From Selaginella moellendorffii (Eukaryota; Plantae; Lycopodiophyta): a DNA stretch of 64,000 nucleotides. Made by a program: the position numbers and the translations under genes. The stretch is from contig NW_003314264.1 in assembly GCF_000143415.4 (NCBI RefSeq), forward strand, positions 2,489,710-2,553,709, in the 5' to 3' direction. The notes beneath the pieces are model-generated. The model made no database searches. It saw nothing but the letters and a program-made list of their open reading frames with translations, and was not told the origin of the DNA. Each line of letters opens with the position of its first letter. The stretch's first letter is position 1. Positions 10,134 to 36,372 of this stretch are shown here, in pieces.

Positions 10134-10346
10134 TAAAGGTGTAAGAATTGATAATATATAGAATATTCCATCCAGCGCTTAAATTACTTCTTAGTCTATA
10201 GAAACTTTTTAAACTAAAAAAGCCTAATTAAATAACTGTACACCATAACTTTTAATTTGAAAAATTATTTTAGGTTATTTACCTAAACATAATTTATTAT
10301 TTGGATTTACTCAAATTTTAATCAATCAATATTATGGTTCTAGTTT

Positions 10347-11460: not shown

Positions 11461-13690
11461 TGATAGTTGAGAAATTTTGTTAATATAGTGTAAAAATTAA
11501 TAAACTGTTAAATTTATTGAAAAATATAACACTAAATTTTTTAATAAATATTACAGAGTATTTAACAAGAGAACAAGTTTATGCATAGATAAAGATGAAA
11601 TATTTCTAAATTAAATTCATTATATTTCTAGCTATATAAATTTTATATCAATATACTTAGTGATAAAAGAGCTAAATTGAAATTAGAATATTTTTAATAT
11701 GAAAATAATTTAATTAACAAATATGAAAAATATAATTGTAACTCTAAGGAATGGAAAACAAAGAAGGTAAGAGACTTTTTTAATGAAGAAATAATATTGT
11801 AACATTATATTACAAGTTTAATATATTTATATACAAAATTTTACACAAAATATAAAAAAACATTAATTTTGACATAAAAATATTTTCTATTAAATTTAAA
11901 TGCTATACTAGTGTGTTTAGTAATTTCTATTACACTAATTAGTTTTTACTTGCATCAAAAAACATTTTGTTATTTTGTACTATAAAAAATCTACTACTTT
12001 ATTTGTGATTGTGAGAATATAGAACCTCCATCTCACATGATTTATTTATTTATTTAATGGAAAATGGTAAATTTCTCTATAAATACATTAATAAATGTGG
12101 ATAATATTTCACTCTTAAAATAATATTACAAAATGCTCTTTAATCTCAAAAATACCTCTCTTTTTTCAATTAAAATTATTTCATATAAAGTTTCATTGAA
12201 AATATTAAATAATAAAAATGAAACTAATGTTAATTTCTAGAAAATAAGTTTTTAAAAATAAACTATTTTTAGATTAAGAAAATCTAGATAACAGTATTAT
12301 TTCTTGACTTAAAATAATCTTTTAGTTAGAAAAAAATTTTATTTGGATTACCTTTAATTATGAACTATATGATGATGAGAATATTAAACAGTTATTTTGT
12401 TAAAATAAATGGTAAAATGTTTATTTTTAAAACTTTAATACTGTTATTAGTAAATAGATTAGAAATTCTTAATAATATGCTAGAATAGTAATTTAAAGTT
12501 TACTTTAATATAGAAAAAAATTAAATACTAAAAAATAGAAAAACTTTATGTGAAAAATTTGTAAGTATTCTAGAAAAATGTATAAAGTAAAAATATATAT
12601 TAATTTATTTTATGATTGAATAATACTTAAAAATAATTATTGACGATTAAAAAGTTTATATTTTATCCATATAACCAAGGTGTTTTACTTATGTAACTAT
12701 AGTGGACCAAAATATTTAGAAGTACTATTTTTCTGAATTAAAATCAAAATTTATTTAAAATAGTTATATAAAATAATTTGTACTTTAGAAAAGCCTTAAA
12801 GTTTTATATATATATAGCTAAAACTAATAGTGTCGCAAAATCAATAAATATAATTAACTTCATAGTTTTAATTTTAATATTTTTTTGGCTAAACTTGATA
12901 ACATGGCAAAAATCAATAAACATAATAGCTTATAAAATCTCAATTTCGAAATTTTTTTTTTATAAATAATACTATCTAATGTTAGTTTGAGTAATGTCAG
13001 TTAAGTAAGATGCTTATTCTCTATTGCCACAATAAATTTTAACAACAATACTGTAAAGACCATAAAAATATAATGACTTAATATATTAGATATTAAAAAG
13101 AACTTCTATTATTTAGAATTAAAATTTTATAAGTACTCATACTTATAGGTTTTTTTCAAATCTTTAGCTATATATATGTAATAAATTATGTACAAATATA
13201 TAATAAAAGTTTATTATAGTAAAATGGATTCAAATAACATATGAAATTTTTTAATACTTTTTAGTAAGTGATAGTATCAATTATTTTTTTGACATATAGT
13301 AAAAAAAGTTGTTGAATTTATGGACTAAAATGAAACACTGAGCTACTTTTAGTATAACTTATTGCAAAGAAAATGTAGCATGTTTTTATCTAATCTCGAA
13401 CAATTGAGATAAAATGTCAAATATTAATCTTGTCAATACACACAAATTAGATATAGAAGGTCCTTATTGGCAATAATACCATAGATTAGTTTACTTTTTA
13501 TATTTTGTATAAAACCTTGAATACAATAGAATAGTCAAACTCAAAACGATGCAATACCTAATAATATATGTCCAAACAAAAAGCTTTAGAAAATATCCCA
13601 ACAAAGAGTCTATTATAAACAACACATATGAGTTAGAAGTACATTGGCTTGTTTTGATGTGAGTCTAAAGTTTTTCAAAAATAAAATAAG
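11461..13690. repeat. Very AT-rich non-coding tract, probably decayed TE-derived DNA; includes an imperfect ~70-bp tandem duplication at ~12817-12960
   Basis: Far more AT-rich than the genic regions, with no credible ORFs. The motif GCAAAA(A)TCAATAAA.ATAAT occurs twice ~70 bp apart. Confidence 0.4.
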
Positions 13691-13711
13691 CAACACAGCC
13701 TTTTAGGTTGG

Positions 13712-14853
13712 ATGGAGGGAGAAAAGAAGAAGAGAGTGGTCCTGGTCACGGGAGCGTCGTCCGGGCTGGGCAAGGAATTCGCGATCGCGTTCGCGCAGCA
13801 GGGATCTTACCGGGTGGTGCTCGCGGCGCGCAGGACGCATCTGCTGGAATCGGTGTGCGAGGAGATCGGGCACCACGATGCCCGCTCTGTGGAGCTGGAT
13901 GTGAGCGCAAGCGAGAAATTTATCGATGCCGGCGTTGATCGGGCGTGGAATTGCTTTGGAGGTGTGGATGTGCTCGTCAACAATGCAGGCATTAGAGGCA
14001 AGTCTTCAATCTCTTTCGAAAATATGAAAAGTTCTTGCTGGTTTTTTTTCTTGAAGATTTTCAATCTCTTTTTTTCTCTTGACAACGTTCTTGGTTCCTC
14101 CGAGGAAAAAAAGTGGCATTAGTTTCTCGAAAGTCCTTGCTTGAAGATTTTTTACCAAGTGTTTTTCTTGAAAATTTATGTGCCTCTTGCTTGACAACGT
14201 TCTTGCTTCTTTGGTGATCATCTTTTTCTTAGCCAACTTTGTTCTTATGATAGTATTATTTTTTGTTTTTCTTTTCCTTCAGGACCTGTAAAGTCGCCTC
14301 TGGAGCTGGACGAAGACGATTGGAACAAAACCTTTAACACGAACACGAGAGGTACATGGCTGGTTTCCAAGGCTGTCGCGAGGAGAATGGTGGCCGCCAA
14401 GAAACCCGGCTCGATCATCAACATCTCCTCCACTGCATCATCCGGTGGCCTTCTTCCCGGCGGGATCGCCTACGCGTCATCCAAGGCCGCCATCAATCGC
14501 TTGACTCAGGTACCAGCTCCCTCCTTCCTCCCTGCTCGCGATTCTAAACGCTAGAGCACACACTCTTTCAGAGCATGGCCTTGGAGCTCGGCAAGTTTAA
14601 GATCCGAGTAAACGCCATCGCAGCTGGGATCTTTCCATCCGAGATCACCGACAGCCTTCTCGACAAAGCCTGGGTCCACGACGCCGCGGCCAAGATCGTT
14701 CCACTGCGCCGGTTTGGACAAGTATCTCCCGACTTGACGTCTCTCGTGCTCATGCTTGCGAGCGACGAACACTCGTCTTACATCACCGGCCAGATCTATC
14801 ACGTCGATGGCGGTCACACTTTGCCTGGGATCCAACTCTGGTCATCTCTTTGA
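13712..14853 (+). CDS. Short-chain dehydrogenase/reductase (classical SDR), probably peroxisomal (PTS1 SSL>)
   Basis: Exons 13712-13997, 14283-14509 and ~14572-14853. Motifs TGASSGLG, NNAG, S...YASSK and C-terminal SSL. Intron 1 is GC-AG (AG|GCAAGT). Confidence 0.92.
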
Positions 14854-18207: not shown

Positions 18208-20650
18208 ATGCCTCGGACTAGCAAGAATGTGGATCACAAGCGCAGGGCAGAGGTGTTGGTAGGAAATCGCCGGGCGATGAGGCTCAAGACTACTGGAATG
18301 AGCGCCGATCTTGCCGATCTTGCGAAGGTAGGGGCAGAGGGCGAGGTGGATGTGGAGAATGGCCAAGCTCTCTCGAAATCTGGGAACTTTGTGCTCGGCG
18401 ATGCCGCGAAAGTGAAGAACAATCTCCGGATCTTCAATATGTGCTACTTGCAAGCGATCAAGGTGTGACATTCTTCCATTCTTTGGTTGTGTCTTAGATG
18501 TTTTCCTTCTCTTTTCTTTTTTCTCTTTCCACAGGAAGAGCAGGAGCGTTGCAAGAAGATGAGGAACGCTTCCCAGCGTCCCGACTTGAAAGCGATCTCC
18601 AAGGTGATCATCTATGCCAAAACGAAGAACCTCTAACATGTTTCTTCTTCACAGATGCTGCGCATGAACGCGATTCTTTTTCCGGAGAAGCGCATTGGCG
18701 ACTTACCTGGTATGCTTTTTATGATCTTCGCGTCGAAGTATACAATGCTTCTTTCTAGGAGTAAAAGTCGGAGACACTTTCTTCTCTCGAGCTGAGCTTG
18801 TCAGCGTGGGGATCCACAAACACTGGATAAACGGAATAGATTACATTGGAAAGGTACTTGCTAGTAGCACGATGATTTATCTCTCACGCTTTGCTTAGGG
18901 AGACAACGATCACAAGACATATAACTTGCCTCTGGCCATTTCTATCGTCATGTCGGGAGGCTACGAGGACGACGTTGACAACTCCGATGATGTGATTTAC
19001 ACAGGACAAGGTGGAAACAATCTCGCTGGTGACCGGCGCCAAATGAAACATCAAGAGATGAAGCGTGGTAATCTGGCCTTGAAGGTTTGTGCTTGCTTTA
19101 CGTTCCATTGGCTTACGTGCTGAGTTTGCAGAACTCTATTGAAGAAGGGAACCCTGTCAGAGTCTTCCGTGGCCATGACTTGAGGCACAGCTACACTAAA
19201 AGGGTGTACACGTACGATGGCCTCTACAAGGTATTCACGATCGATTTCCTAGTCTGCGTTGTTTTAACTGTGTTTGTAGGTAGTGGACTATTGGGCTGAG
19301 AGAGGGATATCCGGTTTCAAGGTTTATAAATTCAAGCTAAGGCGCTGTGAAGGCCAGCCAGCGCTTACCACTGAGCAAGTCCGCTTCTGTAGAGGAAAGC
19401 TTCCTGTGGCGCCATCTGAGCGCGGGTGAGTACGCAGTGAACTTGGTTTGGAAAACTAAAGTTTGATCCTCTCTTTTGCAGACTGGTTTGCAAAGATATT
19501 TCCAATGGACTGGAAGTTTTGCCAGTTCCCGTGTCGAATCTCGTGGACAATCCGCCTTGTGCACCCGATGGTATTTCACAAGTTTCATGCATTCTTTGTG
19601 TGACAAATGACTTTCGTAGGCTACAGATACATCAACAAAATCGAAATTGATGACGGGATTGTACTTCCGCCTCCAGCGCTGGGATGCAGTTGCAAGGGGC
19701 TCTGCGTTGATCCTAAAACATGCAGCTGTGCAAAACGAAATGGACACACGTTTCCATACGTTGACAGCCATGGTGGCAGGTTCTCGACTCGATTTTTCGT
19801 GCAAGACTGATTTTCTTTTGTGTTTTTTAGACTGGCTGTGCCTCTTGACGCCGTGTATGAGTGTGGCCCAAACTGCGGGTGCGGTCCGGCATGTATAAAC
19901 CGAGTGACGCAGCGTGGCCTACGTTACCGCCTTGAGGTGAGCATTGTCAAGTGTTGGCGGCAATTTTGATATGTTGTTGCTACGATTTCAGGTGTACAAA
20001 ACCCAGCACAAAGGATGGGCTGTTAGATCATGGGATTCCATCCCTGCTGGAGCGCCCGTCTGTGAATACTTTGGCAAAGTTATAAAGTCTGACAGTCTCG
20101 ACGTAAAGAGCGACGTCTATTTGTTTGATCTGGATTGCATTCAAACCATGCGAGGAGTTGACGGCAGACAGGTATACCATTTACATTTGGATTCGAGAAT
20201 TTCTAAAACTTCTTCTCCAGAGACGGTGGGGAGACTTGAACAAGTTTTTGGACTACCAGAATGGGAAAGTTAGCTGCGAGTCCAGGGACGCTGAGGATGC
20301 GGAACACCATGGACAAGCGGAGTTTTGCCTGGACGGAGGCGAGTGTGGAGCAGTAGCGCGTTTTATCAATCACAGCTGCGAGCCAAACCTCTTCATCCAG
20401 TGCGTTTTATCGACTCATCACGACATGCGAATCCCTCGGATTGTACTGTTTGCAGCTGACAACATAGCACCACTTCAGGTAAAACTTTTCGCAAATCTAA
20501 TAGACATCCAGATGATCTTTGTTGTGAAAATGGCAGGAGCTAAGCTACGACTATGGCTATGCACTCAACAGTGTGGTCGATTCTGATGGTCTAGTGAAAA
20601 AATTGCCGTGTTACTGTGGAGCACTCTCGTGTAGGAAGCGACTTTATTAA
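18208..20650 (+). CDS. SUVH4: Histone H3K9 methyltransferase SUVH4/KRYPTONITE (SRA + pre-SET + SET + post-SET)
   Basis: About 13 exons. SRA motifs SIVMSGGYEDD, YTGQGG, GNLALKNS, YTYDGLYKV. SET motifs KGWAVRSWD, ARFINHSCEPN, ELSYDYGY. Post-SET CYCGALSCRKRLY*. Confidence 0.95.
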
Positions 20651-21305
20651 CAGCGGAAACGGATGTAAGGAAGTTCTTGACAGATTGATGATGGCAAGTT
20701 CTTATGATATTTGTTTCGCAGGAACAGTATCATGTTTGTATTTGATTGTAAAAGGTTGCGGCTTCGGAGGTTTATATTATCGTCAGGTTCACAACCTTTT
20801 CACGAAGAGTTAGACTGGATATTGATGAAATTTTGGCCAAGCGAACCTTATGTAACAGGAACAAAATCTTAGACCGCGATTAATATTATATGGAGCCAAC
20901 CCAGGCCCAAGAACTGTCTCGTTTTTAAGAGATTGCTTGAGTCTCAGAGGATTGGAAAAAGTATGAGCTTGTCACTAGGTGATACTACGATGGAGCTCGA
21001 GGTTTGGATCATTGGCCTTGGGAAGTCTGATGATGGAAGATCACCTGGATTTTAAGAAGAGTGAAAAATTGTAAGATAAAATGGCGGGATCGTGCTAAAG
21101 AAGAAAAGCTCAACGGCTATATCACTCTCAAATTTTTCTTTTGGGCGGCTTGGTCAGTAAAGAGACGGAAATGTGCCTGGGCGCGATCACGGTGGAATAG
21201 GGTCCGACGATCTTCTCGCCCGCCCTACTCTAGGTACGCGATCTTTCTTTTCGCGCCTGTTCTTTGCTGGATCGTCTCCAATTCTGGATGCTAGGGTTGC
21301 GCGAC

Positions 21306-23509
21306 ATGGCAAGAGGAGGGATCCGGAGGTCGCGCTGCGACGAGAATGCGAGGAGGGCCGAGGAAGAGGAGGCAGAGGCCGTGAAGCGGGCGAAAGGCGC
21401 GGATTATGGCAGCGCCAGGGAGAAAGAGGGCACTGGATCGAGTAAAGAGCAGCAGCAGAGTAGGAAGGGCAAGAAATCTGGGCGTAGGAGAGGCCGCGCG
21501 AAGAAAGACGGGAGCTCCATGGCGACGGCGTTGCTCCCGATCAACGAGAATGCATCTGGATCGTCTCTGGAAGGGGGAATCGCCAAGAAAGACGAGGATT
21601 TGCTCGTGGACAAGGCCAAAAATGTTGAAGTGGAGGCTGTGGCATGTAAGTACCTTGTTTCCTTCTTTTGAGAACTTTGTTCGAAGGGGAGTTTTTTTGC
21701 AGTCGTGGAAAGCACGAAGCCTGCGAGTTTGAGTGAGGATGGAGAAGGTAACTCCACCTTTTGTTTGAACTTTTCTGACGACGTGTTTCCACAGTCGAGC
21801 TCTCGTCATCTTCCTGCATGCACAGCCCCGAATCGCCCAAGGAGAGGACTGTCATCTGGAGCAATGCCGCTTTCTGCTCAGAGCAGCAAACTCAGACGCC
21901 GACTGCGACGATGTCTGTGGAGAAAAGCGTCCTCGTATGCAACGATGATACGGTGGCTGGTATGGAACTGATGACAGCTGAAGATGGTCTGAAGGATACC
22001 AAAGGTAGCGATGGATCTTCAGCAGTGAAACTTTCCTTGGCTGTTGAGGCCAACGAAGTACATGAAGTCAAGGTGCCAGAGAAAAATGAAATGACAGCGA
22101 TCGTCGAAGAGGACGAAGTAGACCACCTGGAGAAAGAGATAGAGAACGAGATCGCACTTCTGACTAAGAGGTTGGCGGAGCTTCGTGCAAAACGGGAGGC
22201 GAAACACAAGACGCAGGAACGAGCAAAGCGTGCACTCAGCTGTCCCCCGACTCCGCTTTCGTCCGGACTACAGGAACAGACGAACGATGGAGACAAGAGT
22301 AAGAGCCGGGGGAAAGGAAGGATGGTGTCGGCCAAGTTTCTGCAGTGGCCAACAAAAAGTCCTGACCTTGAACCAAAGACGTCGGAGAAGCAGGCGTCCT
22401 TTAGAAGAAACGAGGCTACTACGATTTCCTTTCAAGCTACTCCGACGAATGCCGTGACTCCTTTCTCCAAAGGTACTTCGACGGGTGCTGTGACTTCTTT
22501 TTCGAAGGCTACGACTCCTCATCACGGCCGTGCTCCTGTTCCGGACGCTGAGCAAAAGGAAACTTTTCTCAAGTCGGCTCCAAGAGTTTCTGTTCCGGAC
22601 GCTGAGCAAAAAGAATCTTCTCTCAAGTCGGCTCCAAGAGTTCCTGTTCCGGACGCTGAGCAAAAAGAAAGTTCTCTCAAGTCGGCTCCAAGAGTTCTTC
22701 TTCGAAGCAAAGCCATTGAGAAACTCCAGGCAGGCGCAGGTCTCAAGTGTCTAGCTCGGCCAGCGAGCTCCCTGAAGAGTAGCTACCGTTGCAGCCTCGA
22801 TGGCAACTTCATCGAGCAGATCCGAAACCTCAGCTTAAGCCCCGCCACCAGCAACGTTTCGGAGGCATCCAAGAAGTTCGACTGGACCAAGTCGCTTAGA
22901 TCTGGAGCTACCGTGGAGAAGAGGCCCCAGGTTGACGAGAGCCACAAGAAGGCAAAGGGGACTCCGGAAGCACAGCTTCTAGTCGATCTCAAGGAGAGCA
23001 ACAAGGCGTCCAAAGTTTCTCCGTCCGTGACACGAAAGGTGAGGAACGTCGCAAGCCGGTACAACGAGTCTCCTGCTCAACACCAGCCTACGAGGAAGCG
23101 ATCTCTGGACATCCCGTCTCAAGCATCGCCAGACACGGGAGGAGCGGCACCAGCAGCTTCGAGCCACAGGAAAAGAGTGTCACTCGATCAGCAGCAGCAG
23201 CAGGAGCAGGCAGTCGACGCAGCAAATCCTCCAGCTCGAAAGTCTGGCATTGGAGCAGCGGCAAGATCCGGATTGAGTCGTCTCCGGCCGAGGAATCCAG
23301 CGAGCAGGGAGGCGATGAAAACGCCACCGATGAGAAGAGATGGATTGGAGAGCGAGCTCAAAAAGCTGCCGGGTCTGGTGATCAACCGGGAGGTGGAGTA
23401 TAGTCCCAGAGACTCGGGCTGCGTGAAGCGCGCGAGCCAACAAGGAGGAAAGAAGAGCTTCTTCCTAAGCACCGAGAGCTGGGACGCTGGCCATCGAGAA
23501 GAAAAGTAG
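21306..23509 (+). CDS. Uncharacterised low-complexity/coiled-coil plant protein
   Basis: Exon from ATG 21306, small exon ~21703-21747, long last exon to 23509. Coiled coil EIENEIALLTKRLAELR and conserved-looking motifs GRMVSAKF, ASRYN, SPRDSGCVKR. Confidence 0.75.
22535..22697 (+). repeat. 3 x 54-bp coding tandem repeat (VPDAEQKExxLKSAPRVx)
   Basis: GTTCCGGACGCTGAGCAAAA begins at 22538, 22592 and 22646. Confidence 0.95.
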
Positions 23510-23692
23510 AGAAAATCTAAGCGAGGTAACGTTTGTTTCTTCTTTTTTTTTTTCCTCCCATGGTTTGATCGCTCAACTTCTGGCTGGGTCATCCTTTTCA
23601 AATAAGGGGAATATGCTTGTTGTTAAATACTATGCGAATATACTCGTTGTTCTAAGAATATTTAGGGTTCTAGGGAAGAAGGTCAGGAGATT

Positions 23693-25147
23693 ATGGCTGG
23701 CGCCCCGCCTCCAGGTTTGGCGATCGCGCCGATCGATCGATCAATCACTGACGCTTCTCTCTTGTAGACGATAGCAGCCTGGTGGTGGTGTTGCTGGATA
23801 CTAGCCTGCATTTCTGGAATGCAGTGGTGAGGTCCTCTTCAGGGCTCCAACAGGTGAGAATATTTTGCATTTCCTTGAAAGGGGCCAGTTTGATCTCTTC
23901 GTTTCTCACAGGTTTTGTCATTCCTCAATTCCCTGGCGCTCATGAATCACATGAACCATCTGGTGATTATTGCGAGTGGATGCAATTCTTGGTGAGTGAC
24001 AAGAACTTCTTTTTGCCGTTGCTAAGAATTTTCCCTGCCTGTAAATTGCAGCGAATTCTTATATGATTCTTTGGACTCAGATGAAAGAGCTGGTGCAAAT
24101 CACCAGACGGCCTCGGAGAAGATTGTACACAAATTAAATGATTTCGTTTCCAGGGATGCTACTCAGCCTCCGAAATTCCAGCCTTCGCTACTCTCGGCGT
24201 CCTTGTCAATGGCTCTTTGTTGTGAGTATCTCATTTCTATCCTTTTAGTCTTTCCTTTTTCCCTTCGCAGATATCCAAAGGGCACTCAAAGAAAAGATAG
24301 GTCCTTCCAAGCCCAGGGTGAGTAGCGTGGTTTGACCCGCTTGTCTTACATTTGCTTACTACAGATGCTTTGCTTGCAAGCCTCGCCTGACGCTCCTCAT
24401 CAGTAGGATTTTTTGTTTTTTTGTTTTCTTTTTTCCGAGTAATACGTGGTTTCATACGATGGTTTGGGTTTTGAAGGTACATTGCTATCATGAATGCCAT
24501 CTTCTCAGCACAGCGTTCCATGGTTATCAAGTTTCACGAGCTTTATCAAGAAACGTATATTAACCATCTCTTGCTGCCTTTTAGGTGCCAATCGATGCGT
24601 GCATGGTCGGTGCTCAACATTCGGCCTTTCTTCAACAGGTTTGGAGTGAGACTCTTTTGTTTCCTTTTGTTCTATCGTAACATTCCAGGCCGCGGACATT
24701 ACCGGTGGAACTTACTTAATGCCGCAACAAGCGGATTCGCTGTTAGAGTACTTGATGGTAGAAAACTTGGAACTTCTTTTTCATTCTTAAGAGATTTTCC
24801 TGGCAGACAATTTTCACAGTGGATTTACACTCTAGGCAATTCATCCAGCTCCCCCGCTCGGCAGGAGTGGATTTTCGGGCCTCGTAAGGAGAAGAGAAAA
24901 AAGCTTCAATCAAATTATAACAGACATTCTTTGCAGCTGTTTCTGCCACAAACGCACAATTGACATGGGCTATATATGCTCGGTTTGTTTATCAATCTTC
25001 TGCAAGCAACATAAGGAGTGCTCAACTTGCGGGTAAGTCAAGACTTTTGTCTACTTTCCTCTTTTCCATCTTCTGACGTGAGGGAAAAAAAATTACAGCT
25101 CAAGCTTTGCTAGCAGCGGCACGAAGCGCAAGACGCCCGCCTCGTGA
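23693..25147 (+). CDS. TFB4: TFIIH subunit TFB4 / p34 (GTF2H3)
   Basis: About 12 exons: [68 protein letters not shown]..CSTCG zinc finger. Confidence 0.93.
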
Positions 25148-25224
25148 CTCTTACACAGAATACAACACTGGTGGTGGCCGACCTCCTGCTGCGGTTTTGG
25201 TGGTATTAGTTCCAACTCCCAGGA

Positions 25225-25936
25225 TCAACTCCCTTCGAGGTTGCTCTTCTCGGTCGATGCTTGGCTCATGTCGTGCCGCCGCACGGCCTCCTTGAGCTTT
25301 CTCTGATGCTCTTGGAGTAGTAGCGAGCCGGGACGAAGCGAGTGCTACATGACAAGTGCCACGACCTTTCCAGCCTTGTATACGTTACTGTAAGTTCCTT
25401 GTCCAATCTGCAAAGATAAGAAACGTTCCCATCAAATCTTTGCTGCCCTTACCTTGTCAAGCTTTTCGAAAGAATCAGCATCCAGCCTTGGATCGCCTCG
25501 CCAGCCACCGCCATCCGCGGCGACCTTGGGGATGACGCTTTGACGAGGATTTGGATCCTGTGCATGGAGCCTCGCCCGGCGCTTGTCCATGCTCCTGGAT
25601 CTCTCGCCCACTATCCAACTCGATCCTCGTAGATAAATGCGCAGCTGTGGCCGCGAGTAGGATTTGTCCTTGGGACTTCCCTGCGATCTCGAGTTGGAGG
25701 ACGACTTTGCGCAGATACAGCCCATTGGTGTGGAGACTCAGCAGCAGCTCTTCCTTGATTGCACTTCCTTCCAGCTCTCCCTTCCAGCTGCGGCAGCTCA
25801 TTCCCATCCACTGGAATCCGACGCAGCTCCTCGGATTCTCGAGCAGGCAAGCGCTTCTCCCAGCTCCCGGGGCGCCGTAAAGAGTGACATCTAGACTGCG
25901 AGACAGCATTCGCAACACCGCCGCCACCTCCTACCT
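25225..25936 (-). pseudogene. Deleted duplicate of the CDK-like kinase gene at 29826-32431
   Basis: MGCICAKSSSNSRSQ start (25725) and ADSFEKLDK/IGQGTYS fragments are joined almost directly to the last-exon sequence. The whole kinase core is missing and there are many small deletions. Confidence 0.9.
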
Positions 25937-25971
25937 GTGATGGCACACGCGTAGGCAACAGGAATTCACGC

Positions 25972-28392
25972 TTAATTTAGATAATGCTTCAACCGTTTGC
26001 GCCCGGCTTTCTGCTTGGCTTTCATTTTAGCAACTTCAGCTTCCATTAAACCGTTGAGTGGAATCGCTAGAATCAGGTCGGGTGTGCTGGGGAACTTCTT
26101 CCTTGAGGACGCATCTGGGATTCCGTACTTCTCAGCAATGTCCTGCAATTCCGCTCTGAGAAACATCCCACGGTATTTCTGTTTGTCGGCCAGCTGCTCA
26201 TCCTCTTCGTTCTCTCTCTGCTTCTTCTTGGCCTTCTTTTCGTTTGCAAGCCTCTCCCTCAATTTGCCCAACTCCTTTAGCAGCGCAATTTCCTCCTCTG
26301 TCAACCGCAAACACCTGTCAAAAGAAATCTCTGCTTTTGTGTATGCAACTGTGCCGTCGTCCTGCTCATAATGCGTCACCAGTTCCTTCGCTTCCTTGTT
26401 CTTAGTGCCCTTAGTCTTCTCCGGAGTTCCTGAAACATAGCAAGTTAAGAAAAGCCAAGAAAGATTCCTAGGCTACCTTTCTTCCTGGATGTCGGCTTGT
26501 TAGTCTTCTCCGGAGTTCCTGAAACATGCGGGGTCATTAGACAAGAGAAGCCATAATTAAACTACGTTACCTTGTTCTAACGTCCTGTTTTCCTCGTGCT
26601 CCTCCGACGGAAGAGAAGTCGGCCTCGGGCAGACGTACACATAATATAGCTTGAAAGGATCAGTAAGGATTGTCCACTGTATAAATTCTTCTCGACGCAC
26701 GAACTTAAACTCTGTACCCCTGTGAGCTCCGGGGTTAAGGCACACCTGAACGAACCAGAAGTGCAGCATTCCGTGCCCGTCCTTCCAGACAAGCAATCCG
26801 TCAACGTACTTGAAATTAAACGATCCTGTCATGTAGAAAACCTTCTCGTTCGTGTTCAAGTCGCTGGCGGTTATCAGCTTCGGCTTGCCAGATAAACTTT
26901 CAACCCGATCCGCCTGGTAGTTGGTGCCTCGAAAACAGAAGCCCTCGTCCAATACAGCCTCTGCTACAATCCCCTCGCATATGTATCCTACTTGGGGCCA
27001 AACGGTGTTCCTTTCCTTCAGTAGCTGTTGAAGGAGCGCACGCATCTGCGGAGTTCGGTACGCATGCCTCTCCCTCCTTAACAAACGCATCTGGAGATCG
27101 AGTTCTCGGATAAACGGAGTGCACGGAATTGAAGACTCCTGGCCGGCAATAGGGAGAAGAAATCCGTCCACAAGTTCGGGCTGCTTCCGCATTGACTGGA
27201 AATTTTCATCCTCCCTGAATAACCAGACAACCTCACTCCAGTCGCAAGCATCAGCAAGGAATTTATGGCCGGGTGGCGAACAATAAGCAGACGAAACTAT
27301 CTCAGTCGTAAACCTAGCGGGCACCTGCCAACGAACAAACAATTAGCTGAAACATAGTTGATGACCACATACCGGCCCGGTTTCAGTCTTCCGCTTCAAT
27401 ACGGCCATCGCGAGCGGATTCTCAACTTTCCGCTTGTTGAAAGCATTACCAGTTATTGTGTTCACGTACTGCGCACATTTTTCCTCGAGCAGGTACAAGG
27501 ACATAGGATGTCTCCCAGCAAGATGGTCCACCACAGCGACACGGTCAGGATTCTCTCGGAGCATCGGGCCGAGAATTTTACAAGTCGTGAGAAATGTATT
27601 GTACTCCTCCTGCAGTAAGCAAGATAATGACGATACGGGAAGAAGAATCTATTTTACCGTGGTGAAAAGACAGTTGAAATGCTCGTTGATATGTGTTACG
27701 TCCACCCGAGTTACGTTGTGGGAAAATGTCTGGAACCTGTGAGTAGACCACTTGTAAAAGACATCTAGCCAGCGTCTGGCTGCCTGTGCATCTTCTGTAT
27801 CCTCCAAACGCCTAGGTGAACCGTTCTTGTGTGACTTATCGTAGCGTTCTGCGCCATCAACCAAGAGAAAGAACTTCTCATTCTGAACTCTGATTTTCAG
27901 AAAAGCATCCAGGCTGTCAGGGGAGTCAATAAACCCAATCTTCTCGACAGCTTCGGCGTCATCGCTGAAGGCGAAGTAGAGTGCGGCCGTAATCTGTGGG
28001 ACGAGAGGGGCCGTCGCATCTAAGTACCAGATGCATATGATCCTGACTTTCGGAATCTGGGCCGAGATAAGCAAGATGGCCAAGGCCCGCAAAAAACATG
28101 ATTTCCCTGAACCCTTTACGCCACTCAAGGAAACTACGCATGAGACATCCAAGGATGGGTTCTCCCCAATCTTTTCAACAAGACGCGAAAGTATCTTCCC
28201 GTATTCCTGCCGAGTTACAAAATCGAAGACCTTAGGCGGCCTCGTGCCTGTTCTAGACCAGGGCAAACCGGGGAATGGCAGAGACGCAACGATCTCACCT
28301 GGCCTTGGATCGACTAGTTTCCTGAAGTTCTCGTCCCCAAGGGCAATGATCGTCTGCTTGATTTGCTCCGCTCGCACCGCATCCGCCGCCAT
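25972..28392 (-). CDS. Crinkler/RHS (CR)-type protein: P-loop NTPase + PD-(D/E)xK restriction-endonuclease-fold domain + coiled coil + Rho_N/HeH-like tail (~741 aa)
   Basis: Exons 28392-27658, 27609-27373, 27324-26571, 26518-26477 and 26429-25972 (GT-AG introns of 48, 48, 52 and 47 nt) give an open 2226-nt frame. Walker A GVKGSGKS, Walker B FFLLVDG, REase-like GYICE...FNFKYVDG...VQV...H. Confidence 0.75.
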
Positions 28393-28518
28393 TCGGTTGA
28401 AACCTTAAACCCTATGATATATACTGGCAAATTCTCTTAAATCCACACCTGGAAGAGAAAGAAAATCGCTTTCTGATTAAGCTGGAGCTAAGTGAATTTC
28501 TGGCACTCCTTACATTGT

Positions 28519-28734
28519 GAGCCAACAAGGAGGAAAGAAGAGCTTTTTCCTAAGCACCGAGAGCCCATCGGGAAGAGTAGAGAAATGTCGTCGTTTTAAG
28601 AATATTTAGGGTTCTCGGGAAGAGCTAAGCGCGGTACGTTTGTTTCTTCACCATCTTTTTATAATAAGTCGTCGTTTTAAGAACATTAAGGGTTCTAGGG
28701 ACGATCGAGCGATCACACTGACGCTCTCTTGTAG
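28519..28734 (+). repeat. Start of tandem segmental duplicate (copy of the 3' end of the 21306-23509 gene and the TFB4 upstream region)
   Basis: GAGCCAACAAGGAGGAAAGAAGAGCTT at 28519 matches 23434, followed by deleted/rearranged copies of 23510-23770. Confidence 0.88.
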
Positions 28735-29725
28735 ATGATAGCAGCCTGGTGGTGGGGCAGCATTTCTAGTGGTGCGGTCCTCTTCAGGGCTCCAACAGGA
28801 GATTATTTTGGATTTTCGTGGGAGGGACCAGTTTGATCCTACTTTCTCACACAATCCTCTGGCCCTCTGGTGATTATTGCGGATAAGAAGTTCATTTTGC
28901 TTTTTCCTCCCTGCAGATTGCAGCGAATTCTAATACCATTCTTTGTACTCCGATGAAAGAGCTGGTGCAAATCACCGGAGAAGATTGTACAGAAGTTAAA
29001 TGATTTCGTTTCCAGGGATGCTACTCAGCCTCCGAGAGTCCAGCCTTCGCTACTCTCGGCACTCCTTTCAAGCCTCCTCATCAGTAGGATCTTTGAATTT
29101 TTTTTCCAATTCAATGGTTTGCGTTTTGAAGGTATATTGCTAATGCGATCTTCTCAGCACAGCGTTCCATGGTTATCAAGTTTCACGAGCTTTAGCGTAT
29201 CTCTTACTGCCTTTTAGGCGCCAATCGATGCGTGCATGGTCGCTGCTCTACATTCGGCCTTTCTTCGACTGATACTCTTTTCTTTCTTTCCTTTTAGTGT
29301 AAAATTCCAGGCCGCGGACGTTACCGGTGGAACTTCTTTGATGCCGCAACAAGCGGATTCGCTGTTAAGAGAGTATCTGAGAGAGTTGGAACTTGTTCTT
29401 TCTTAGGCACGGTGGATTCACAGTGGATTTACAATCAAGGCAATTCATCCAGTTCCCCCGCTCGGCAGGAGTGGACTTTCGGGCCTCGTAAGTAGAAGAG
29501 AAAAAAAGTTTCAATCTCAACTTATAACAAACATTCTTTGCAGCTGCTTCTGCCACAAACGCACGATTATCAATCTTCTGCAAGCAACATAGGGAGTGCT
29601 CAACTTGCGGGTAAGTCAAGACTTTTGTGTACTTTCTCTTTTCCATCTCCTGACGCGAGGGGAAAAAAATTACAGCTCAAGCTTTTGCTAGCAGCGGCAC
29701 GAAGCGCAAGACGCCCGCCTCGTGA
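28735..29725 (+). pseudogene. TFB4: TFB4 pseudogene (duplicate)
   Basis: Colinear with 23768-25147 but lacks exon 1/ATG, has lost donor sites and internal exon pieces, and is frameshifted by small deletions. Confidence 0.9.
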
Positions 29726-29825
29726 CTCTTACACAGAATACAAACACTGGTGGTGGCCGACCTCCTGCTGCGGTTTTGGTGGTATTAGTTCCGACTCCCA
29801 GGAAAGGAAAGACAAGTACCTGGAA

Positions 29826-32431
29826 TCAACTCCCTTCGAGGTTGCTCTTCTCGGCCGATGCTTGATTCATGTCGTGCCGCCGCACCGCCTCCTTGAGCTT
29901 TCTCTGGTGCTCTTCAAGTAGCTCTTCGATGTCTACTGGGGCAGAGAAGCCGGGACGAAGCAGCGGGCCAGAGTGATACATGCGCTCCTGAGGATCATAG
30001 CCCTGCAAAGCAAAAGTATTTAAGTACATTCACAAGCAGCCGATATGACAATGTTACCGCTGGAGTCGGCTGAGAATCTCTCGCTCCGTCCCTGGCCGGG
30101 GCCTCGGGAAGATTTGGGGGCCCACGGAACACGTCCGAGCGCCGGGAGTCGAGCTCGTGTTTCCTGTCGGCGGCCTTGAGCACGCTCCGCAAGTTGTGCT
30201 TGGAGAAGTCGCCATCCTTCCCTTGGCCTTGCTCGGCAAAAGACCCGTGCCGTGACGAACTGCTTGTGATCCTGTCAACTTCCACTTGTCCGGTGGATGA
30301 TCGCATTGCCCTGCTCGTCGACCGTTGCGGGGCCATTCTCACGTCCTCGTCTCGTTGCTTCCGGGACCAGTTGGCAGTCGCTGCTGTCGGGTTCCCAATT
30401 GGGCCAGAGCGCGATGATGCTGGAGGCACAAACTGGCGTGGTGGAACCGGTGACGTGCCCCGGACATCCGTGGGTTGCTGCCCGTATCGCGGAGCTGGAG
30501 GCTCCATGGGAAATCCAGATGCTGACTTTTCGGAAAGATACGTGAACTTTTCGCTCTTGCTCTTCGAGGAATGAGAAGACAAACGCCGTTTCTACGGAAA
30601 AAATAAAAAGTAAAAAATAGAAAAATAAAACGTGAGAAAAAAAAGAAAGAAATGCAGCCATTTATTACGAGCAGAAGTTACCTGTACGGAAGCGTGAAGC
30701 TCTGCATTGGCGTCGGGCGCAGGCACGGCCCTGCTACGTTCCCTGGAGCCATGCCTCCGGCCTTCTGCAACACCATGCTTGGCTGCTCTCTGTCTGGAAT
30801 GGTAAAAACAAGCACCGCTTTAGTATAATTGGACAAAAGCACGAGGATATAATTACCTCCTGGACTCTTCATCTCTCGTCTTGGCGTCAAATTCCTTGCT
30901 CGGAGGATATTTTGGTAGAACAGATGGATCGCATGGAAACGGCTTAGTGTTAAAAAACTGCATGGAAGCACTCAAGTTAGAATGTTACAAGTGCATGCAT
31001 GAGCCACTTACATCTGCTTTCAGTGCTCCAGCTGCAGTTCCTCTATCAGCCGGCTCAATCGCAAGAAGAATCTCGAGAAGGGCCAGTGCGGTCGAAGGGA
31101 AGTCTTTGTAAGTATCAGCGATGCAGCGTTTGTAAGGCTGCTGCGGCTTAAAAATCGTAGCGTGAGGAAGTTTGGATTTTTTCCAATACTCTTCCGATGG
31201 CGAGCCACATAGCTTAAAAATCTTGTGTAATTGCTCCACCTGTTCGATCAATAAGAAGAAAGGCAGGCGTTACTAAACATCGTAAAACAAAAACCAACGA
31301 GCATACTTCCGTTCGCCCAGGCATGATGGGCTTGCCAGCCAGTAATTCAGCTAGTATACAGCCAGTGCTCCAGAGATCCACCCCAACACTGTATTCTGTA
31401 GCACCGAGTAGTAGCTCCGGCGGCCTGTACCAGAGCGTCACAACCCGGCTAGTTAAAGCAAGGTTCTGGTAGGGGTGATAAAACGTCGCCAATCCAAAGT
31501 CGGCAATCTTAAGAATCCCGCTGTTATCTATCAAGAGGTTGGACCCTTTGATGTCGCGATGCAGAACGCCTCTGGTATGGCAATGATCGAGTCCTCGTAT
31601 TAATTGTTGTAAGTAGCATTTAACCTGAAATCGCAAAAAACATGTAACTGAAGGAAAAAAAAAAGAGAGTAGCTTTTGCAAACCTGTGGTTCTGTGAACA
31701 TGATGCCCGGACAAGCTGCGAGCCCGGCAAGATCGTGCTCCATGTACTCGAACACAAGGTAGAGGCTGGACGACATGCGGGAGGTAACCAGGCCTTCCAG
31801 CTTCACCACGTTTGGATGGTCGAGCCTCCTGAGTATCTGGATTTCCCGGGCCATGAACTTGACGCTCTCGGGCTCGAGGCTGTCAAAGCGGACCTTTTTG
31901 AGTGCCACGACCTTTCCAGAGTCGAGATCACGAGCCTTGTATACGTTACTGTAAGTTCCTTGTCCAATCTGCAAAGATAAGAAACGTTCCCTCAGGCAAC
32001 CATATCAAAGAAAACCAAAGGCAAAGAAATCCACTTGCGAGCCTTCGTACCTTGTCAAGCTTTTCGAAAGAATCAGCGCGTCGAGGAATCCAGCCTTTGA
32101 TCGCCTCGCCAGCCACGGCGGAGAGCCAACCGGGCCACCCCGCGGCAACTTGCTCGCCCTCGGCCTGCTTGGGGATGACGCTTTGACGAGGATTTGGATC
32201 CTGTGCATGGAGCCTCGCCCGGCGCTTGTCCATGCTATCCTCGCGACCATTTTGTCTCGTCCTGGCTTTGGATCTCTCCCTGTCCTTTTCCACGATCCCG
32301 TTGAGCCCCTCGAGCGTCTCGATCCTCGCAGATCCATTGAAATGCCGCAGCTGTGGCCGCGAGTAGGATTTGGCCTTGGGACTCTCCTGCGATCTCGAGG
32401 TGGAGGACGACTTTGCGCAGATACACCCCAT
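29826..32431 (-). CDS. Plant CDK-like (CKL/CDKC-related) Ser/Thr kinase with N-terminal MGC acylation motif
   Basis: MGCICAK, QVAAGWPGWL..IKGWIPRRADSFEKLDKIGQGTYS, EPESVKFMAREI, HRDIKGSN, DFGLA, TSRVVTLWYRPPELLLG, C-terminal YHSGPLL. About 7 exons. Confidence 0.93.
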
Positions 32432-32938
32432 TGGTGCGCTGTGGAGGAGACTCTAGCAAACAATCCCTTCTAGCCCTCTTCCAGTAGCTCTTCCTTGCTT
32501 GCAGCTCTTAGCTGCGGATGAAACCCCAGCTCATTCCCATCCATTGGAATCCGACTCCAGTGGCACCATAATCGCAGCTCCTAGGGTCGAAAAACCTAAA
32601 CCCCGGGATCCTCGAGCGAAATTCCAGCAGCGGATGCTTCTCCCAGCTCCCGGAGCGCCGTCGAGAGCAAGATCTAGACTCCGAGACAGCATTCACGACC
32701 GCGCCATGGCTGCGCAACACCGCCGCTTCTCCAGCGCCACATCCTACCTTGGATTCTCTTTCGAGCTCTCTCACAGCGCCTTCTTTCTCATCCCTCGCCC
32801 TCGTCGATGATCGCACTGATCGATCGAAAGTTTTGCCACTGCGCAGGAAAAATAGATTTTTAAGTGTCCCCCAAATTAGGTTATAAGAGTTACTATGACG
32901 GGCGCGACGCGTCACTGACGTGTGGCCGTCGCAAGAAA

Positions 32939-35022
32939 ATGGAAGCCATGGATATTTCCATGGCCTTGGCGCCCGAGTGCCTGCGCAATGTCGGTGGCGC
33001 TGGAGCGATCGCTGCCGCGGCGAGGGAATTCTCGGCGAGATCGTCTTGCCGGGCGATCGGGATCCAGGTATGTGATCGATTGCGCGGTCGTTTTAGCAGC
33101 AGGATTGTGATGACCTGATTCCAGCGGGATTCTAGACGAGGCAGCGAAGGCTGCGTTTGATTGCTAATGCTACGATCGATAGGAGCGCTGGAGACATTGC
33201 GCGAGAAGCACCAGCGCCAGGTTCTCGATTCTTTTTGTATGAATTCTTTTTCTTTTCGTGGTTTTCACGATCAAAACGGTTGCCAGGGAAGATTAAGATT
33301 GATCCGCAGATCTTGCAACCCGTGGATGGATTTCCAGCGCTTCCGCGGACATTTTCTATCACGTATGATTTTTCTTGCGACTGCTAGCATCGATTTTCTT
33401 ATACTTTTGGAACTATGGACAGGATTCATGGAGTTACTTTGGAGGAAGAGTTGGAAAGGTAAAATATTTCTTTGTGTTCAACTTAACTTGGATGAGTTCT
33501 TCTTTCTCAGACTGAAGCAAGACATCAAGGGTGTGGCTGGAGTGATTGATGTTTGCTGGATTGGAGAGCTGGTCCAGGGAGGACCAAGAGGAGGCTATGT
33601 CACAGTCCAGCTTGAGCTTCAAAGCGATGCTACACTAAGGAGTGTTACGAGCGCCATTCAAGCGCTTGACAGCTCCAAGTTGCTGGTTTTGCCATATAAG
33701 AACAACTCCTGGAAATGGAGGTAAGCAACAAGCCTTGTGTTTTCGTTCGCTGTATGACGAAAGTTTTTTTTTCATATCAAGGGATTACAAGATCAACTTT
33801 GGAGTGGCTGGGTGTGGAAATCCGATCATTCTGGTTCATGGATTCGGTAAGCGCCAGAATCAATGTGTTGTAAGTTTGATTTGCTTGTGTCTTTACGTTT
33901 CTCTAAAGGTGGAAATGCCGGGCACTTTGGAAATCTGCTATCGTATCTAGCGGAAAACAATAAAGTCTACGCGATCGACCTCTTAGGCTTTGGTGACTCA
34001 GAAAAGCCAAAGCAGGCTGACTACAGCCCGGATTTGTGGGCGGAACTGGTCTGCGGTGAGTTTCTTCCAGTTTTGTTAAGGCCTCCCGACATTGTCTTGG
34101 ATAGACTTTGCGCAGGAGTTCACGGAAAACGGAGCTGTGCTGGTTGGAAACTCCATTGGCTCGCTCTCAGCACTCACAGCTGCCGTTAAAGGTGGAAAGA
34201 ATACTGTTCGGTAAGAAAGCCGATTCCCACTAATGTCGCTTTTAAGAATGGACTTTTCGTTGTCGTAGTGGACTGGTGCTGCTGAATTGTGCCGGGGCAA
34301 TGAACAGGAAAGGCTTAACTCAAGATGGTTTTTTATTGCAGCTGCTGTCACCCGTGTTCGTAGGTGTTGAATACATACTCGCACAACCGCGCTTCGCAAA
34401 CCTTCTATTCAACAGGTCAGTGCTTTTCTCGGACATATAGTTTCATTAGTCAAGCGCTTATAGATTTCGAAGCAAGGACAACATCAGAAAGATACTCACT
34501 CAACAAGCTTATTGCAACAAGGAGTCTGTCACAGATCAGCTGGTATTTCCATCCATGTTGCTCTTTCTTCCACAAAGCTTTTGCTTTACAGGTCGATATT
34601 CTCTATCATCCGTCAACCGACGAAGGGGCCGTGGACGTCTTTGTCAAAGTCTTCACTGGAAACAATCCAGGTAACTAAACAAATCTCGGTTTAGTTATTT
34701 GATTTTTTTTTTCCAGGGTCGAGGCCAGAGAAACTTATGTCCGAAGTGGAGATCCCCGTTCTTGTCCTGTGGGGTGATCGAGATGCTTGGACCCCAGCGA
34801 ACGGGCCCGTAAGTCAGATTTTTTGAGCTCTTGGTCGCCAAAATCCTCATAGTTTTTTTCTCTGGATCGATTCAGGTGGCAAAGTTCTTTGTGGATTTGG
34901 AGAAGAAGAGAAACGACGTGAAATTCTACGCGCTCGAAGGTGTCGGTCACTGCCCTCACGACGATCGACCCGAGATCGCTGCCGAATACATTCGCTCTTT
35001 CCTAGCATCACTTAACTGGTAG
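32939..35022 (+). CDS. Plastid-type alpha/beta-hydrolase (pheophytinase-like family) with an extra N-terminal domain
   Basis: Multi-exon: LVHGFGG, YAIDLLGFGDSEKP, VGNSIGS nucleophile, LVLWGDRDAWTP, GVGHCPHDDRPE. N-terminus resembles a transit peptide. Confidence 0.88.
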
Positions 35023-35117
35023 CAACGTTTAAGATTAATTAACACACATTTAAACACTAAGCTAATCTTTAAGAATATACCTCGTATCTGGCAAGAACCC
35101 TAGATCTTACTCACTCC

Positions 35118-36372
35118 ATGGCGCTCTTCTTCGTCAAGAACAATTTCTTCCTGGGCGCGTACCAGGAGGCGATCAATGCCGCCGGCAAGCTCAAGGGATT
35201 GTCCGATCAGGAGGCTGCCGAGCGCGACTACTTCGTCTACAGATCGTACATTTCCTGCGGGCTCTACCAGGTACCGAATCTCTCTCTTCTCGCACTAGAA
35301 GATCACACAATTCGAGTGGATTGCAGATTGTTATCGATGAGATCAAGAGCTCGACCAGCGCCCTGGAAGCTGTGAGGCTGCTTGCTACATACTTCCTGGG
35401 AGAAAAGGTAAACAAGGGATTTCGAAAGAAACAAAGTAGCAGTGTTGTTGTTCCAGGAGTCGGCAAAATCGTCTCTCAAGGACTTGTTAGCGGATCCACT
35501 GGTTGCTTCCAACAACGACGTGCTTCTGATAGCGGGCATCATCCATGCTCACGAACAAGACTACAATGAAGCGCTCAAGTATACTCATGCTGGAGAGACG
35601 CTCGAGCTGTAAGTTAAATTTTTTCTTTTTCTTTTTCTCTTCTTTCGTTGGAGAAAACTTTTGTCTTTGCTTTGTTTCTCTTTTCATTTTCTTCTCTTCT
35701 GATCGAGAGACCCTTTTTTCCAGATGTGCGCTAAACATTCACATGTACTTAAAGCTGAATAGACCCGAGCGAGCCGAGCAGCAGCTAAAAGTCATGCAGC
35801 GAATCGACGAGGACCACACTCTCACGCAGCTGGCCAATGCGTGGGTCAATCTAGCGCTCGTGAGTTTTCTCCTGTCAAGATCTTCGTATAGTTTCTATAA
35901 CAATCGTGTTTTTGGCCTGGACAGGGAGGCTCCAAGATTCAAGAAGCCTCTTACATATTCCAGGAGCTCTCCGAGAAGTACTCGTGGACGGTACCGCTCA
36001 TGAATGGAAGGGCCGTTTGCCACATGCATATGGGCCAGTTTGATGACGCCGAGCAGCTCCTTCTAGACGCTCTCCTCAAGGTACAAAGTTTTCAAAGCTT
36101 TGTTTTTATTATCGATTGATCAAACACCCTTGCTCCAGGATAACAAGGACGCTGACACTCTCGCCAACCTTATTGTCTGCTGCCTCCATCTCGGAAAATC
36201 CACCACTCGCCATATGAGGTAACTTTGACACTCCGTTTGCTCCAACGTTTTGCTAAGTTTTGTTTTGTTGTTTGGTAGCCAACTCAAGTCATTGCAGCCG
36301 GATCACCCGACGATCCAGCGTCAAGTCGCGGCCGAGACGATGTTCCAGCAGGCACTCCAGGCCATGGGCTAG
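35118..36372 (+). CDS. COPE: Coatomer subunit epsilon
   Basis: LFFVKNNFFLGAYQEAIN, IDEDHTLTQLANAWVNLA, KIQEASYIFQELSEK, DTLANLIVC, QLK...HP. Seven exons. Confidence 0.93.

Follow-up and report, generated by a model that had tools for sequence, protein, structure and literature searches.

A spliced and transcribed Selaginella moellendorffii gene for a putative Crinkler/RHS-type NTPase with a restriction-endonuclease-like fold

The CR (Crinkler/RHS) proteins are known above all as cell-death effectors from oomycetes and fungi (PMC12957317, PMC5289972), and the RHSPs are counted among them (PMC5289972). Their commonest C-terminal module, in the account of Zhang et al. 2016 that is relayed by PMC5289972 and PMC12957317, combines a nucleoside triphosphatase (NTPase) with a restriction endonuclease (REase), and the statements of Zhang et al. 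2016 (Nucleic Acids Res 44:3513) cited in PMC5289972 link this module to prokaryotic transposons. CR homologues have previously been reported in land plants (PMC5289972, PMC12957317), and plant versions with other headers may, according to the passages of these two papers that deal with them, act intracellularly on invasive DNA. Here we describe the gene SELMODRAFT_405102 (LOC9643527) of the lycophyte Selaginella moellendorffii, which occupies the minus strand at 25972-28392 of a 64,000-nucleotide stretch of contig NW_003314264.1 (assembly GCF_000143415.4; the whole stretch analysed, hereafter the window). To the best explanation of this locus, in which the identity of the protein and its putative mechanism are taken together, we assign a probability of about 0.6. 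Of its two parts, the identity and architecture (a host gene for a CR-type protein with an NTPase and an REase fold) are very likely right, and the mechanism (a nuclear, ATP-gated nuclease-fold protein) is tentative, at somewhat under even odds.

Like the CR proteins, for example the Mucoromycota proteins with a Crinkler N domain (Zhang et al. 2016, as far as it is quoted in PMC5289972), the Selaginella protein carries a predicted NTPase followed by a predicted REase fold in one polypeptide of ~700 residues. Unlike them, it has no ubiquitin-like header or LxLFLAK motif and begins with a helical N-terminus bearing the motif LPFPG...RP, the site of its nuclease fold is lysine-less, and it ends in a SAP-like C-terminal tail. 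Moreover, the gene is endogenous and intron-bearing, and nothing marks its product as a secreted effector. The trypanosomatid RHSPs (PF07999) resemble it in the language-model features of exon 3 (0.96); however, PF07999 itself gave no match at E up to 5, and the locus is not subtelomeric or retrotransposon-rich but has PPR, SET, Tfb4 and kinase genes as neighbours. CR proteins were already known in land plants, and what is added here is a conserved site that lacks the lysine, a SAP-like tail, a shared ancient intron and a fern homolog. SELMODRAFT_405102 was not named in the literature searched. The locus bears on the role of CR homologues in free-living hosts such as plants, for which it provides a clean case, expressed and single-copy, in a model lycophyte, and it gives a functional label to a protein without a Pfam domain.

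Gene structure and transcripts of SELMODRAFT_405102

When the window was read from its letters alone, four pieces in the list of open reading frames (ORFs; 27649-28392, 27343-27564, 26557-27342 and 25972-26379) were proposed to join into one spliced frame of ~741 residues. All four pieces are present in the list, and the proposed frame was borne out: five minus-strand exons (28392-25975) run in frame across four introns and sum to 2223 nt, or 741 codons. All four introns begin with GT and end with AG, and they measure 48, 48, 52 and 47 nt. The stops that close the first two ORFs fall within introns 1 and 2, both of 48 nt, and two further introns follow, just as had been predicted. The ORFs therefore appeared broken because a prokaryote-style ORF track had been applied to an intron-bearing gene. 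The gene cannot be called hidden, as it had been, since the public annotation XP_002963723.1 has exactly the same model. That protein (P0001; 741 residues; EFJ35594.1 / XP_002963723.1) matches the window exon for exon with 0 mismatches in an exact spliced mapping, and it carries the name "uncharacterized protein". Furthermore, when 1.84 billion representative proteins were searched by phmmer with exon 3, the 741-residue protein was recovered with 100% identity at residues 325-575, which is the position expected from the spliced model.

In the order of translation on the minus strand, the gene model is as follows. The 5' untranslated region covers at least 28393-28558, as transcript contigs extend to 28448 (contig X1) and 28558 (contig X6), upstream of the ATG at 28392. 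Exon 1 (27658-28392) encodes residues 1-245 with the helical N-terminus, the LPFPG...RP motif, Walker A and Walker B, and its junction is present in contigs of all four runs described below. Intron 1 (27610-27657, 48 nt, phase 0), likewise seen in the contigs, holds the stop of ORF 27649-28392. Exon 2 (27373-27609) encodes residues 246-324, assigned from the spliced mapping and the structural model to the helical lid region of the NTPase and a linker. Intron 2 (27325-27372, 48 nt, phase 0) holds the stop of ORF 27343-27564 and is also supported by contigs. Exon 3 (26571-27324), placed by the spliced mapping and by phmmer, encodes residues 325-575 plus one base and comprises a linker and the putative REase-fold domain. 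Intron 3 (26519-26570, 52 nt) and intron 4 (26430-26476, 47 nt), both in phase 1 and both visible in the contigs, enclose the 42-nt exon 4 (26477-26518), which encodes (G)TPEKTNKPTSRKK and is included in the contigs of all four runs. Exon 5 (25972-26429), from the spliced mapping, encodes residues 590-741, a Lys/Glu-rich tail, and the stop, and the 3' untranslated region covers at least 25954-25971, since contig X5 reaches 25954.

The stretch 25972-28392 is contained, whole or in part, in 20 public sequencing runs. Contigs from four of these runs, each of a different study, were aligned to 25700-28700, and the same four joints were found in all four runs, with 47, 52, 48 and 48 nt skipped and CT..AC ends on the plus strand. 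Contig X1 (2188 nt) covers 26066-28448 with 0 mismatches and with all four introns gone. The RNA label of these runs is a guess by the tool; contig sets of 24-57 million letters with intron-free copies are consistent with cDNA. Variants of the second allele were present in some of the transcript contigs. Transcripts are thus neither absent nor stop-retaining, and SELMODRAFT_405102 is confirmed as one intact, spliced and transcribed nuclear gene.

Exon 4 arose by tandem duplication: its 42 nt and the 47 nt of intron 4 make up an 89-nt second copy of the intron 3 acceptor end plus the beginning of exon 5. The duplication spans 26411-26527 and includes an exact 28-nt repeat (26411-26438 and 26500-26527). 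Both 89-nt copies are spliced in, which gives rise to a second TPEKT peptide, and the duplication is found in the other haplotype as well.

Predicted domains and their structural neighbours

The protein consists of five parts in the order helical N-terminus, P-loop ATPase, poorly conserved linker, REase-fold domain and Lys/Glu-rich tail. Every motif that the sequence-only reading had quoted was found on direct inspection, namely LPFPG at residue 38, GVKGSGKS at 91, ALYFAFSDD at 137 and FFLLVDG at 174 in the N-terminal half, and GYICEG at 437, YVDGLLV at 497, FVQVC at 515 and GAHRGTE at 523 in the C-terminal half.

In the N-terminal half, Walker A (GVKGSGKS, residues 91-98; 28099-28122, minus strand) has G91, G96, K97 and S98 invariant in an alignment of six sequences (A1). 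In a second alignment (A3), to which a short paralog without Walker A was added, the Walker A residues are invariant or nearly so, K97 being missing only from that paralog. Walker B (FFLLVDG, residues 174-180; 27853-27873, minus strand) has an invariant D179 and is followed by a nearly invariant E182; a strand at model residues 173-178 fits this assignment. Thus both the Walker A pattern GxxxxGK[ST] and the Walker B pattern hhhhD of AAA+/STAND proteins (FFLLVD, residues 174-179) are present, and an LP(F/Y)PG...RP motif is conserved upstream of Walker A in the family alignment. Pfam placed P-loop matches (NACHT, AAA_16 and nSTAND5) at residues 67-209 of the protein and its relatives, all below threshold, the best being NACHT with 19.3 bits against a cut-off of 26.7 and AAA_16 with 18.8 against 32.6. 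A sequence profile search of the PDB with the whole family returned generic P-loop matches only.

The two halves were folded separately, each with its own family alignment. The N-terminal model (residues 1-335; predicted local distance difference test score, pLDDT, 66) opens with a long helix at residues 2-27 and then has strands and helices arranged as in a P-loop NTPase, with a helical lid after them. A Foldseek search of the PDB with this model matched Trip13 (E 3e-4), ORC/Cdc6, mS29 and TnsC (E 5e-3), and the NB-ARC structures of Sr35 and NRC3 at E 5e-4 to 5e-3. The N-terminal half thus looks like an AAA+/STAND-like P-loop ATPase. It resembles the NB-ARC domains of the plant nucleotide-binding leucine-rich-repeat receptors (NLRs) and other STAND NTPases in its fit to Sr35 and NRC3 and in the sub-threshold NACHT and nSTAND matches. 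Unlike these, the protein lacks sensor repeats, leucine-rich or otherwise, as well as a TIR or coiled-coil domain, and has a nuclease-fold domain instead.

The C-terminal half looks like a restriction-endonuclease fold, with its core predicted at residues 433-560 (26617-27000, minus strand) from the model (m0f574ddb61dc), VIA-align and the ESM Atlas. The model (residues 385-575; pLDDT 63, predicted template modelling score 0.66) shows the order alpha-beta-beta-beta-alpha-beta, with a helix at model positions 49-66, strands at 101-105, 116-121 and 127-134, a helix at 151-157 and a strand at 164-174. About 37 of the top 50 rows of VIA-align are PD-(D/E)xK nucleases by hand count, with a best Z of 4.9. 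Among them are FAN1, N.BspD6I, Card1, SwaI, MspI, McrC, NgoMIV and the bunyavirus cap-snatching endonucleases, and furthermore Can2, HsdR, SduA, NucC and HamA. Since the individual scores are weak, the fold is assigned from the enrichment of such nucleases among the hits and from the ESM Atlas match described below. An REase fold had been expected at 26600-27000 from the letters alone, and the helix-strand order, the VIA-align enrichment and the Atlas match all agree with it.

Many prokaryotic ATPase-coupled defence and transposon proteins were among the structural matches of the two halves, all of them weak (Z at most 4.9; TnsC E 5e-3). The combination of an AAA+/STAND-like ATPase with an REase fold is indeed that of the prokaryotic ATPase-coupled PD-(D/E)xK nucleases, such as McrBC, Hachiman HamA, Shedu SduA, Card1/Can2 and Tn7 TnsC. 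Unlike these systems, the Selaginella protein is eukaryotic and single-chain, is encoded by an intron-bearing gene and carries a nuclear-type tail.

Conservation in the nuclease-fold domain centers on W433, G437, C440, E441, D499, G500, H512, Q517 and H525, all invariant in the family alignment. The invariant residues of the core are E441 (26974-26976), D499 (26800-26802), H512, Q517 (26746-26748) and H525 (26722-26724). In the model, E441 lies in the first helix, D499 right before the second core strand, and Q517 closes the third. Strand 3 reads Q517-x-(C/T) in all relatives, so that Cys or Thr stands at the usual lysine position and Gln replaces the acidic residue; the family alignment holds no invariant lysine or arginine in the domain. 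A canonical (D/E)xK site had been proposed in the segment TE.KF. This was not upheld, because the K of the ExK candidate in TEFKF is not conserved; the conserved set is instead E...D...Qx(C/T) with two histidines. A histidine could possibly stand in for the missing lysine, judging from the conservation pattern.

Lys and Glu abound in residues 595-741, which contain the basic patches KKAKKKQ and RKRLK. KKAKKKQ (residues 654-660; 26218-26238, minus strand) is a candidate nuclear-localisation signal by pattern match. A helix-extended-helix motif resembling SAP and Rho_N domains was placed at residues 681-712 (26062-26157, minus strand) from the alignment and Pfam. This motif, with the pattern R..L..IA...G........K.......L..A, closes the protein, and R681, L684, A688, G692, K700 and A711 are invariant in the lycophyte and fern relatives. 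Pfam Rho_N matched residues 682-701 with E 9e-4 and 19.6 bits against a cut-off of 24.9. A feature search of the ESM Atlas with residues 595-741 gave no usable match. No hydrophobic N-terminus or secretion signal was found in the protein. Since it has basic patches and a SAP-like motif and lacks a hydrophobic N-terminus, the protein would be expected to reside in the nucleus, tethered to DNA.

The link to the CR proteins was then drawn from structure. The best ESM Atlas match of the nuclease model is a 725-residue Mucoromycota cluster (template modelling score, TM, by query 0.56; 144 residues aligned; root-mean-square deviation 3.6), 88% of whose members have the Crinkler N domain PF20147. It is followed by a 547-residue Mucoromycota cluster and then by bacterial and viral PDDEXK families. 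The independently folded NTPase model found the same 725-residue cluster as its best Atlas match (TM by query 0.60, 255 residues), and the 547-residue cluster reappeared among its matches. Moreover, the language-model features of exon 3 adjoin Euglenozoa clusters with RHSP PF07999 (0.96; 201 of 256 features common), and those of the NTPase half adjoin Mucoromycota and Basidiomycota clusters. Since the two halves share their best Atlas match, the CR architecture is supported by shape and not by sequence statistics. The order expected of the NTPase and REase class of CR proteins, a P-loop NTPase and then an REase-fold domain in one polypeptide, was found (models at pLDDT 63-66). The Crinkler header PF20147 was found neither in the whole protein nor in residues 1-70, and the sequence contains no LxLFLAK motif; the helix at residues 2-27 could be an alternative, helical header. 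The protein thus appears to be the NTPase and REase effector module of CR proteins without the Crinkler header, although no sequence statistic establishes its formal membership. Of the original CR-type assignment, therefore, the architecture is supported by the Atlas and feature searches, and a sequence-level link to non-plant CR proteins is not.

Relatives, origin and competing explanations

The relatives found were Selaginella paralogs at several loci (P0002-P0005, P0007 and P0008, with the members of their clusters) and one fern protein, KAI5057838.1 of Adiantum capillus-veneris, which is full length including the tail. Overall identity among the paralogs is 23-35%. Homology searches with exon 1, the whole protein and the family alignment returned only the protein itself among the matches listed, which is a weak negative. 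Pattern scans of metagenome contigs and of 185,579 prokaryote genomes, each with a single peptide pattern, gave no relative and are likewise weak negatives. The fern homolog has 690 residues and is encoded by an intronless gene (L002, 6001-8073; CM043968.1), with no other gene called within 6 kb on either side. The paralog models P0002 and P0005 (385 and 739 residues) are truncated or without the Walker A stretch, and their N-terminal halves are scrambled; these models may be pseudogenes or mis-annotated.

An allele of the protein (P0009, 96% identical) lies on scaffold GL377590.1. Over 18 kb this scaffold aligns collinearly with the window at 95-97% identity, and it thus represents the other haplotype. 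The gene order in both haplotypes is PPR, SET, a 702-residue protein of unknown function, Tfb4, SELMODRAFT_405102 and a protein kinase. The GC content at third codon positions (GC3) of SELMODRAFT_405102 is 0.59, compared with 0.43-0.72 for its neighbours. No flanking terminal repeats, inverted or long terminal, were found, nor was a second copy of the gene within the window, and a search of Rfam over 20000-36000 returned nothing. Intron 1, a phase-0 intron directly ahead of the EEY motif, falls in one and the same column of the alignment in four paralog lineages of Selaginella, and introns 2-4 are private to SELMODRAFT_405102. Since intron 1 is common to paralogs of 23-35% identity and a fern homolog exists, the plant family is old, which argues against recent transfer as the explanation of all plant CR genes.

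Several results weigh against reading this protein as a CR-type ATPase with a working nuclease fold. At the sequence level, Pfam RHSP PF07999 did not match at E up to 5, and phmmer with exon 3 against the 1.84 billion representatives found nothing beyond Selaginella paralogs and the one fern protein. Pfam, run on four exon pieces and six family members, gave no NACHT, AAA_16 or nSTAND score above the gathering threshold, and returned no Crinkler and no PD-(D/E)xK family in the exon pieces and these members. The PDB sequence profile search with the nuclease part gave only a chance match to HscB, and the Rho_N/SAP-like match, also sub-threshold, was detected only in XP_002963723.1 and its allele. 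At the structural level, the confidence of both half-models is no more than middling (pLDDT 63 and 66), the best Z in VIA-align, 4.9, is below the level that would count alone, and Foldseek found no PDB match to the nuclease model at E 1e-3, the best being the Cas4-family protein ACE1 at E 0.024. The canonical PD-(D/E)xK signature, in which D opens strand 2 and strand 3 carries (D/E)xK, is not present, and catalysis is uncertain because the lysine and the acidic residue of (D/E)xK are replaced. Between the alleles, dS is 0.05 and the dN/dS ratio of 0.39 indicates only moderate constraint. On the other side, the residues of the site are invariant at 23-35% identity in lycophyte and fern, which argues for a functioning site.

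A putative mechanism can be outlined from these parts. The protein would act within the plant's own nucleus, where its tail would anchor it to DNA or chromatin. Binding and hydrolysis of ATP by the NTPase would gate the nuclease-fold domain, which would bind and probably cut nucleic acid at its lysine-less, non-canonical site. The likely setting would be either genome conflict, for example with DNA that is foreign or selfish, or a chromatin function acquired by domestication. A more far-reaching idea is that lycophytes and ferns keep an ancient, diversifying nuclear family of CR ATPase-nucleases for cell-autonomous restriction of viral, transposon or other foreign DNA, with a lysine-less E/D/Q/H site and a SAP-like tether. 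We consider this idea a long shot; if true, it would amount to a non-NLR arm of plant immunity that is mechanistically akin to the prokaryotic ATPase-nuclease defence systems. The domain map, the candidate catalytic residues and the conserved tail make mutational tests direct.

The replacement of the canonical residues is open to another reading, namely that the nuclease-fold domain is catalytically dead and the protein is a domesticated ATP-dependent binder of DNA or chromatin, remodeller-like or acting as a tethering factor. The canonical lysine is indeed absent and a Gln takes the place of the acidic residue in every family member, and the SAP-like C-terminal motif and basic patches would suit such a binder. 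However, E441, D499, Q517, H512 and H525 are invariant from lycophyte to fern at the low identity given above, which is the pattern of a working site and not of decay, and we regard a dead domain as rather unlikely. The invariance of H512 and H525 together with the missing lysine might also speak for a domain that cuts RNA independently of metal by means of these two histidines, like the tRNA-splicing endonucleases of the same fold, and a tRNA-splicing endonuclease (3iey) and Prp8 endonuclease-like domains were in fact among the VIA-align matches. Nevertheless, those matches rank low (Z 3.3-3.6) amid many DNA nucleases, the conserved acidic pair E441/D499 suits metal-dependent chemistry, and the tail motif is like that of DNA-binding SAP domains; an RNA-cutting domain therefore seems improbable.

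The sequence-only reading had further suggested a mobile gene or one that was horizontally acquired. A mobile-element cargo or transposase-like gene, or a recent acquisition from a fungus or oomycete, would explain why fungal CR proteins are the nearest structural neighbours and why so few relatives, patchily distributed over Selaginella and one fern, were found by sequence. The gene also lies between two copies of a local tandem duplication, and the NTPase and REase module is tied to prokaryotic transposons in the part of Zhang et al. 2016 cited by PMC5289972. The observations on the locus point the other way. The gene is single-copy in the window and sits at the same position, between Tfb4 and the kinase and with the same flanks, in both haplotypes; transposon cargo was accordingly rejected on this synteny and on the lack of terminal inverted or long terminal repeats. 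The host-like GC3, the paralogs at 23-35% identity without a young repeat family, the phase-0 intron 1 in four paralog lineages, the full-length fern homolog with the same tail and the lack of a relative in the metagenome and prokaryote scans (one pattern each) speak equally against mobility or recent transfer, which we judge to be highly improbable. SELMODRAFT_405102 is a long-resident host gene of an old, divergent lycophyte and fern family; the data support neither a recent transfer nor an active mobile element, and an ancient transfer into early vascular plants is possible.

The flanking duplication and other features of the window

SELMODRAFT_405102 is bracketed by a diverged tandem duplication at 23434-25922 and 28519-32705, with 65-98% identity in pieces. 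Copy A has kept a Tfb4-family gene, with the kinase only as a fragment, and copy B has kept the full protein kinase, with a Tfb4-like stretch without a gene call. The same arrangement of the duplication was found in the other haplotype (GL377590.1). Next to the gene, at 25700-25877, contigs of high depth (130-680) align in pieces only, with a 63-nt skip replaced by 90 other letters; these contigs probably derive from the paralogous kinase of copy B and not from that spot. Elsewhere in the window, ~4 kb at 10001-14000 have a GC content of 0.26 amid sequence of 0.53-0.58, without a long ORF and with one short tandem repeat.

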